Shown: positions 6,001-9,000 of the stretch, one piece after another | Layout: each line of letters begins with the position of its first letter | How positions within the stretch are numbered: position 1 is the stretch's first letter | From: Oculina patagonica | Lineage: Eukaryota | DNA length: 64,000 bases | NCBI RefSeq assembly: GCF_052425735.1 | Contig: NC_135762.1 | Location: 1,860,001 to 1,924,000, forward strand | Direction: 5' to 3' | Translations under genes and position numbers: made by a program | The notes under the pieces: model-generated | Told to the model about the DNA's origin: nothing | Seen by the model: the letters and a program-made list of their open reading frames with translations, nothing else | Databases searched by the model: none

Positions 6001-9000
6001 TCCAGATCGAGCAGTCCGAGAGTTCGAGCTGTAGCCGAGGTCACTGTGTTGTTTTCTTGGGCAAGACTACCTAACTCTCATAGTGCCTCTCTCCACCCAA
6101 GTGTATAAATGAGTACCAGCAAAAAATGCTGGGGAGATACCCTGCGATGGATAAGCATCCCATTCAGGGGGGAGTAGAAATATTCCTAGCCACTTAATGT
6201 TAAACTGAAGCTGGAATTAAGCTTTAAGTGAGTATGGGCAGCATGGCTCAAGGCTTCCCTTATAGACATGAGCAAGTGTTAGTAATTGAAGACAAAATGT
6301 CATGTTGGCAATTAGACAGTTTTCCTGTCTACAACATATTGTAAATAACAAGGCTTCATACTTTTAAGCCATTCTGAAATGTTGGTGTCTTCATGTTTTA
6401 GTCTTTCTCTTTCAGGATTTGCCAAAGCTTCTATAATACAATCTTTTTTCACATTAAGGTAAATAACAATAACAAATACAGGTACATCTACATTAAATGT
6501 ACATTTGCATCACAGATGTAAGGACACTTTGAAAAATTAAAAACAAAGTGAAGGGAAAATTTAATACCACCCTGAGTGTTCCTCATCAGTTTTGTTTGTT
6601 ATCAGGATATTGTCAATGATTTTGATTAAACATCATTTGAGGAATCAATCTAACTATAAAATAAAAAAAGAAAGGTTCTAATATATATTTCTAAATGTGA
6701 AACAATCATGACTCGACACAAGCAGTATACATGTTGTGGTTTAAATTTTTTTTGGTTGAAACCAGTTTGATTCTTATTTTCCTTTGTTGTAAATTATGAC
6801 AATGAAATGAAACAAATGAAAAAAAAAAAACACGCTCGTTTGAAAACTTTTGAACCAAAGATAAATTTAAACCACAACATACACACAGTTCTGAACATGA
6901 CTTAAGTTTCCAAAGTTGACTAACACCTTTCACAAACTGTTTTACTAATGGTATAACACAAACGCTGTTAAACATATTTATGCATCAAGGATACAAGCTA
7001 AAACATCATATGCCAGTGGAGTCAGGTACTTCAGTGAGTCCACTACAGGGCCAATGAAGTTATCATACTTCTGAATCTGTGACAGCAACTGCATACAAAC
7101 AATAACATTAAAATTTTATCAGAATGAAAATCCTCATCACTCTTTTATCACACATTTGCTATGCCTTTATTTTAAGTTTTTAGACAGTTTTTCGTGAAGA
7201 GAGCCAGAATGATGCTTTTACCTCAAATTCAACTTTATTTGTTTTTTACATATAAAATGTACAAAAGTGCATGCCCCTGCTACCAGTACTATAGTTACAA
7301 AACTAATGGAGGCAGGGGCAAGAGTTAAGAAAACTTTCTTGTAGATAGACCCTAAATATCCTAAACTATGTTACCAGCAGGGTTAGGAACTCACATATTC
7401 AAACAGAATGCCTGGATTACTGTGACTCAATTTGCCAATCTGCCTTCCAGATGGCTTAACATTCTCTTTTGTTAATCTCCTGCAAAATAATATGAAATTG
7501 ACCAAGTGAGCAAAGCAGCCAAGGAACCTTAATTGGCATGAATGAACTTGTTAATCTGGTTTTAAACAAAAGCAAGCATTATTGTACAAAACAACTTCCT
7601 CTGTCAAGTCAGTGTCTTCTTTACATCTACATGGATATCTAGAAGAGCTTAAATTTACTAACAATTTTAACCTAGATTGAGCAACCATCAAATTGGTTCC
7701 CAAGGATCACTACATTAAAAACAATGTTGCATTGTTTAAAAAAAAGCTTATTGGCATTGGAGACTTTAAATTTACACTTACTTTGTGATGTATTTTGCTC
7801 TCTTTATTGTTGCAGCTTTTGCCAAAACCATTTTTGGATGATTACTGTATGACTCATTTTTCCATTGACCGTAAAGTCGGTACCTAACAAAAAACACCAT
7901 TATGTACATACCGGGTATATTACACTGTAAAACAATTAACATATAAACATAACATTTTGACACAATTCATCAGATCAGAAGCAAAGTTAAACCATGCTAC
8001 ATGAAATTGAAAACATTCAGCTAAACAAGAAGGCAACTCTTTCTAAATAACATAAATATTATTGATTAAGATATATTGCAGAGTTACACTGAAACTTAAC
8101 AGAAACACATCAACTTTGGACTGCCCCAATCAATTATTAAAAACTGAGCTGAATGTTTGTGGATGAACGAATGAAGTGACAGTCTCTCTAGCCACAGCAT
8201 CAGAGATCCACAGTTAATCTAGGAAGTTTGCGGCATTGAAGGTGAGCAAATTAAGCTGATCTCCTCCATGAGAGGAAAACAAGGACACCTTCCATGCAAT
8301 AGAGCATCACTTCCACCTATCAACTTAAAAATTCTCCTAACTGATCTCCAGTGTATTTGCTTAGCATAACTTGGGAGAATTTTAACTCCTCCTAAGTTAA
8401 TACCTGATTTGTTTATTCTCAATATATCTATGCCTGAATTTGAATTGAAAAAAATAATTAATGTTTAGGAGGATTTAACTACATTGTAATCAACAATGGA
8501 CACAGCCAAAACACAAAGACAAAACACATACCTGAGCTCATAAGGAAAACGGCACAACATGGCCCAAAGTTCTTCTGCTAAACTGGAGTTGCAATCCAGC
8601 AATGAAATTGAAGGTAAAAGAACTTCATCCACTAGTGTCAGAAGGTCACACCAGACTTTTTCAACCTACAAAATTAAACGATATAATGGTGAGTTTAAAT
8701 TGTAATTACATGTACTTGATTTAAAAAATCATTAATGGATGTCAAGTACTTCCTTTCTGCTTGCGACTTAAACAATCTAATTTCACTTAATCATAAGCAA
8801 CAGAGTAATAAATGGAATTGGAAACTCAGCCACCAACTATGTCAGTTTGATTTTCGCTAGATGATAATGCTCTGAGCTTCCAGTTATAACTCTGACTCCG
8901 TCATTCGTTTCTACATGGTTGCAACAGACATAACCTTTCATAATTCCCTGACTTTTCCCTGAAAAAAATAAAATTTCCCTGACCAAAAAAAATAAAAATG

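Follow-up and report, generated by a model that had tools for sequence, protein, structure and literature searches.

Two introns of the THOC2 gene in a 64,000-nucleotide stretch of the Oculina patagonica genome (contig NC_135762.1, positions 1,860,001 to 1,924,000; hereafter the window) probably hold the genes for one and the same box C/D snoRNA. This RNA is restricted to a group of stony corals, and its D' guide is expected to direct methylation of a uridine in helix H86 of 28S rRNA. As read from its sequence, it is a probable single-guide snoRNA of an ordinary class, lineage-restricted and present in two copies, here called A and B. Copy A occupies positions 6644 to 6579 of the minus strand (66 nt) and is built as follows.

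6644-6638, minus strand: 5' stem of copy A (7-bp terminal stem)
6636-6630, minus strand: box C of copy A, ATGATGT
6629-6617, minus strand: D' guide of copy A, of which 6627-6617 is the part that pairs with LSU rRNA
6616-6613, minus strand: box D' of copy A, TTGA
6604-6599, minus strand: box C' of copy A, TGATAA
6598-6590, minus strand: 9-nt D-side spacer of copy A
6589-6586, minus strand: box D of copy A, CTGA
6585-6579, minus strand: 3' stem of copy A

The whole element reads TTCCTCA-A-ATGATGT-TTAATCAAAATCA-TTGA-CAATATCC-TGATAA-CAAACAAAA-CTGA-TGAGGAA, with AATCAAAATCA immediately upstream of box D'. A sequence-only reading of this DNA had described a 66-nt element with a 7-bp stem, boxes C, D', C' and D, and AATCAAAATCA before box D', and all of these parts were present. 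Box D is CUGA, and box C (AUGAUGU) matches the RUGAUGA consensus at six of seven positions; boxes C, D' (UUGA) and C' (UGAUAA) are all off consensus. The distance from D' (UUGA) to C' (UGAUA(A/U)) was 8-9 nt across the copies, and the layout is that of a snoRNA kink-turn, in which a 7-8 bp stem leads into a 3-nt bulge (AAU) with GA after it. Because the D-side spacer is just 9 nt long and varies between copies, the element was regarded as a single-guide snoRNA. The search with Infernal and Rfam that the same reading had proposed gave it no support: no snoRNA family matched at gathering scores in the whole window, the best sub-threshold scores being 17.5 for snoR72 (gathering score, 43), 15.9 for SNORD42 (39), and 14.3 for SNORD41 (41).

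The THOC2 host gene lies on the minus strand, where Pfam THOC2_N, Thoc2, and Tho2 matched exon pieces; copy A is on the same strand and is thus sense to THOC2, as had been claimed. A 1638-aa THOC2 relative was aligned exon by exon from approximately position 18850 down to position 4 of the window, which contains stretches of N near 1090-1570. Elsewhere on the minus strand of the window, positions 28372-40632 hold an uninterrupted 4086-aa reading frame for a FAT-like giant cadherin with 33 cadherin repeats, EGF domains, and one laminin G domain. The intron that hosts copy A and its two flanking exons are composed of the following features.

6443..6994, minus strand: U12-type GT-AG THOC2 intron hosting copy A, 552 nt (splice signals, Pfam profile)
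6994-6987, minus strand: 5' splice site of the host intron, GTATCCTT, with G6994 as its first base
6460-6453, minus strand: branch site of the host intron, ACCTTAAT, 11-12 nt before AG
6444-6443, minus strand: 3' AG of the host intron
6995..7088, minus strand: THOC2 exon upstream of the U12-type intron (Thoc2 profile positions 10-48)
6362..6442, minus strand: THOC2 exon downstream of the U12-type intron (Thoc2 profile positions 48-75)

U12-type introns were recognized by a 5' splice site /RTATCCTT, a branch site TCCTTRAY approximately 8-20 nt from the 3' splice site, and the lack of a polypyrimidine tract. The signals reported earlier for this intron hold up, with GTATCCTT at its 5' end, ACCTTAAT at the branch site, and no polypyrimidine tract before AG. 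The intron interrupts Pfam Thoc2 (PF11732), and its splice junction, 6995|6442, was deduced from the reading frame together with the Pfam profile; the number of junction-spanning reads recovered was zero. The 3' end of copy A lies 136 nt from the last intron base, the same distance as was given before, and approximately 119 nt from the branch site, which is further away than the optimum of approximately 50 nt reported for mammalian intronic C/D snoRNAs. A second AG is found on the minus strand at 6434-6443, 9 nt past the U12 acceptor (tattatag), and its use would lead to an in-frame TAA stop, making it a possible alternative or poison acceptor. Alternative choice of a U12-type 3' splice site has been reported for human THOC2 (bioRxiv 10.1101/2023.10.12.562036), which is a minor-intron gene; the human intron described is intron 37, different from the coral one (PMC12547740). 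A literature search brought up no account of a snoRNA hosted by a U12-type intron, although such a report may exist.

The second copy was located in another THOC2 intron.

9993..10059, minus strand: paralogous snoRNA copy B, 67 nt, 87% identity to copy A
8666..10421, minus strand: U2-type THOC2 intron hosting copy B, GTAAGT ... ttaattttgtag (exon map, splice signals)

The intron of copy B was assigned to the U2 type because it starts with GTAAGT and ends with a pyrimidine-rich tag. The stem, boxes, and D' guide of the two copies are identical apart from one base adjoining box C, whereas the D-side spacer (CAAACAAAA versus GAAACATTT) and the flanks diverge. Two repeats were also observed around copy B. 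An (AAT)n run directly follows it, and a very high-copy repeat occupies approximately 8940-9900 of the same intron, with a summed contig depth of approximately 200,000 in a DNA run and many internal joints.

By analogy with its class, the snoRNA would be carried in the THOC2 pre-mRNA, released from the spliced intron via debranching and exonucleolytic trimming, and protected by core proteins (Snu13, Nop56/58, and fibrillarin) bound to the C/D kink-turn and the C'/D' motif. The D' guide AAUCAAAAUCA would then pair with UGAUUUUGAUU, placing fibrillarin on the U of CUUGAU[U]UUGAUUUUCAG. Production of copy A would rely on excision of a U12-type intron and that of copy B on excision of a U2-type intron. 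The sequence-only reading had tied snoRNA output to minor-spliceosome activity; this would apply to copy A, but the total output would not hang on the minor spliceosome alone, since copy B carries an identical guide in a U2-type intron and weakens the dependence. With a twin copy in a major-type intron, hosting by a minor intron is a curiosity and not a new mechanism.

The target was sought in the rRNA of the same assembly, which lacks a proper rDNA array and includes full SSU, 5.8S, and LSU model positions 1-940. Further LSU fragments are an isolated piece on contig C10 (415 bits, model positions 2478-2985), a degenerate 3' piece, and one partial unit on C3. The C10 piece (C10:2825604-2826131; approximately 530 nt, 528-568 nt) is embedded in non-rDNA sequence, and a 54-nt stretch at its 5' end has approximately 30 dispersed genomic copies that are 85-92% identical. 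In both LSU pieces of the assembly, the D' guide AAUCAAAAUCA pairs with UGAUUUUGAUU at 11 of 11 positions, all Watson-Crick, upholding the claim that the guide is complementary to LSU rRNA. An anchored 11-bp match was obtained by chance with 0.22% of shuffled guides and 0.26% of random 15-mers from the window. For the D guide, which is 9 nt long and variable, no target of at least 9 bp was found in the scanned LSU, except for a single 9-mer, a chance match that includes a G-U pair, for the copy on contig L022. Counting to the fifth guide base upstream of box D', the predicted methylated nucleotide is the bracketed U in CUUGAU[U]UUG. This is position 2726 of the Rfam LSU model, in helix H86 of domain V, and it corresponds to yeast 25S position 2717, because eight sites in Table 2 of PMC11542601 fit a model-minus-yeast offset of 9.

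It is unlikely that copies A and B encode a real, expressed C/D snoRNA for which the LSU match is not the working target, i.e., that the RNA is an orphan, acts on another RNA, or acts on an absent part of 28S. The guide-LSU duplex is short and A-U rich (11 bp, nine of them A-U; -10.4 kcal/mol), and the scan left out LSU model positions of approximately 940-2412 and 2985-3401 (approximately 1.9 kb) and all snRNAs, where a better target could lie. In contrast, a match of this kind is rare by chance (0.002-0.003), the guide is the best-kept part between A and B, and the predicted nucleotide is methylated in other eukaryotes. The H86 uridine is retained as the predicted target.

Yeast snR51 and human SNORD41 guide methylation at the Um2729/Um4306 site, and yeast Um2724 is guided by snR67. 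The coral RNA shares with these guides its class, its architecture, and uridine 2'-O-methylation, but their sites lie 7 and 12 nt downstream and the coral nucleotide (yeast position 2717) differs. The coral RNA is also very short (66-67 nt), has one usable guide, and bears no sequence-family relation to SNORD41 (14.3 bits against the Rfam gathering score of 41). Yeast Um2729 and human Um4306 are listed as H86-region sites in a table of PMC11542601; at the position of yeast 2717, Table 2 of the same paper lists no modification for yeast or human and marks Arabidopsis 'np' (non-mapped). The earlier reading, which did not count the predicted U among the yeast or human sites, agrees with both lists, where it is missing. 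In the Drosophila modification map, the stretch from Gm3184 to Cm3298, in which the equivalent position would be at approximately 3250, has no other entry. Tomato Um2721 and tobacco Um2720 of 25S helix H86, in contrast, are listed in PMC11542601 Table 2. In tomato, the RNase T1 fragment AU(Um)CUG (2719-2724) was detected by mass spectrometry with 100% occupancy, and joining U-psi-UG (2715-2718) to it gives the context UUUGAU(Um)CUG (PMC9483110 supplement). Because these fragments give a matching sequence context, the coral site was equated with tomato U2721. The same rRNA nucleotide is mapped as 2'-O-methylated in tomato and tobacco, so the site is not unprecedented; the likeness is in site context (GAU(Um)CUG versus GAU[U]UUG in the coral).

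Relatives of the element were collected by scanning metagenome contigs with a pattern that fixed 24 nt of box C, the guide, and box D', and five contigs were returned. Since the search pattern fixed them, the invariance of box C, the guide, and D' in these copies is not independent evidence, and identity was measured outside the pattern for the same reason. Four of the loci (L018-L021) are orthologous THOC2 loci with exons 82-93% identical to those of the window by BLAST, and the element was present in the same intron in all four. Outside the 24-nt pattern, identity to the window was 0.88-0.905 for the snoRNA, 0.85-0.94 for the exons, and 0.53-0.61 for the 3' intron flank, and that of the 5' flank was far below the value for the 3' flank. 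The comparison of orthologous introns that had been proposed thus found the element kept at close to exon-level identity. In a DNA contig from another run (X16), six differences fell within 6395-6578 (184 nt) and none within 6579-6639.

When seven copies were compared, the loop between D' and C' and the D-side spacer were the places that differed. All seven agree in box D and at positions 1-6 of box C, position 7 of box C being G in copy B; box C' was conserved in 7/7, and D' is the same in A and B. Position 7 of box C and the base before box D formed U-A in four copies, U-G in two, and G-U in one, and the outermost stem pair was G-C, A-U, or G-U. Such pairs are of consequence only in an RNA folded into a C/D kink-turn, and their covariation supports that fold.

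The U12-type signals extend further than the snoRNA. GTATCCTTGATG was invariant at the 5' end of the intron in L018-L021, and their branch sites, TTCCTTAAC/CTTCCTTAAC, TCCCTTAAC, or TTGCTTAAC, lie 10-12 nt before TAG. A more distant THOC2 locus, L024, kept the 5' splice site GTATCCTTT and the branch site TTTTCCTTAAC, and its U12-type intron contained no snoRNA element. Locus L023 includes only the last approximately 239 nt of the intron, in which the branch site CTCCTTGAC was kept and no element was found. For the full-length THOC2 relatives P0012 and P0019, no DNA locus was traced. U12-type signals at this position are therefore common to every related locus recovered, and the snoRNA occurs only in a smaller group of corals.

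Reads from two small-RNA libraries (X21 and X22) and one polyA library (X24) were mapped to the THOC2 introns. The three libraries are labelled organism B and may not be from the species of the window. On a 4.1-kb stretch, X21 and X22 gave 19 and 4 reads, respectively, with none on copy A or B; X24, at very low coverage, also gave none on either copy. A third THOC2 intron contains a further candidate.

8152..8296, minus strand: H/ACA-like snoRNA or scaRNA candidate in a third THOC2 intron (Rfam SCARNA3)

This candidate matched Rfam SCARNA3 with 33.9 bits (E 9e-5), short of the gathering score of 47, and it has ANANNA-like and ACA motifs. Sense small-RNA reads fall in two bins spanning 8118-8391, which account for most of the X21 depth on the 4.1-kb stretch and for all of the sense-strand depth of X22 there; five X21 reads start at 8194, within the candidate. 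The H/ACA-like match together with these sense reads implies that THOC2 probably hosts a second snoRNA class. The small-RNA libraries can detect snoRNA fragments and are too shallow to count against A or B.

The two elements could also be an intronic regulatory element or decaying, unexpressed snoRNA relics and not working guides, which we consider improbable. The lack of reads on the element while the H/ACA-like element of the same gene has reads would fit this reading, as would the degenerate boxes D', C', and C and the U12-type intron of L024, which has no element. Against it stand exon-level conservation in five or more taxa in which only the spacers changed, covariation of pairs that matter only in a kink-turn, the same features in copy B in an intron of a different type, and a copy kept outside THOC2 exons in the species of L022. 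A functional guide RNA encoded by A and B remains the preferred reading.

In a BLAST search of the 529-Mb assembly, copy B was the sole other match to copy A (87% identity). The guide-plus-box pattern matched the genome at 16 places, i.e., copies A and B and 14 sites outside THOC2; the 10 of these 14 that were inspected all lacked a box C at the guide distance. With a covariance model built from the seven copies, A and B were the only hits among 150 scored of approximately 180,000 first-look candidates. The sequence-only reading had named a high-copy repeat in both orientations as the result that would count against it, and what was found is two copies in 529 Mb, both sense in THOC2. A chance resemblance or a dispersed-repeat fragment, which an A-T rich sequence with short boxes might suggest, is highly improbable and is refuted as far as the searches reach by these two copies, both on the sense strand of one gene, and by the orthologous position of the element in related corals.

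The position of the copies is not fixed. In L018 (5-62 and 567-635, minus strand), the next THOC2 intron downstream contains another copy that shares the same 5' flank of 40 nt, whereas in the window the second copy, B, is three introns upstream of A, with two exons between the host introns in the exon map. This difference indicates that the snoRNA copies change introns between species. Contig L022 (OFER01009049.1, positions 1-1283), from another organism, contains the snoRNA and the downstream half of the U12-type intron, including TTCCTTAAC and AG; the 13-14 nt after the acceptor match the first bases of the THOC2 exon exactly, GTAAGT occurs 27 nt past the acceptor, and no further THOC2 exon sequence was found on the contig. 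Approximately 250 nt downstream of this block, the same strand holds a reading frame for a GNAT acetyltransferase of 196 aa. These arrangements indicate that DNA duplication carries the snoRNA to new places inside THOC2 and beyond it. That it spreads as a DNA module together with a U12-type branch site and 3' splice site is conceivable but quite doubtful; if the L022 copy is spliced, duplication of the snoRNA would be a route by which minor-type acceptors and mini-exons are seeded in new genes. On this doubtful view, production of copy A would also couple one rRNA methylation to minor-spliceosome activity.

Set beside protein-coding genes that host multiple snoRNAs, THOC2 carries paralogous copies one per intron, the intron positions differ between species, and one host intron is of the U12 type. 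Counting the H/ACA-like candidate, it hosts two or more kinds of snoRNA here. Cnidarian snoRNAs are nearly absent from the literature that was searched, and the present element adds a well-supported cnidarian candidate with a concrete predicted 28S site. Two modest curiosities are attached to it, namely the type of its host intron and a predicted site shared with Solanaceae. The THOC2 intron at the position of copy A has kept U12-type signals in every related locus recovered. As the site is methylated in Solanaceae and lacking from the yeast, human, Arabidopsis, and fly lists, the coral snoRNA may represent an independent gain of one rRNA modification.
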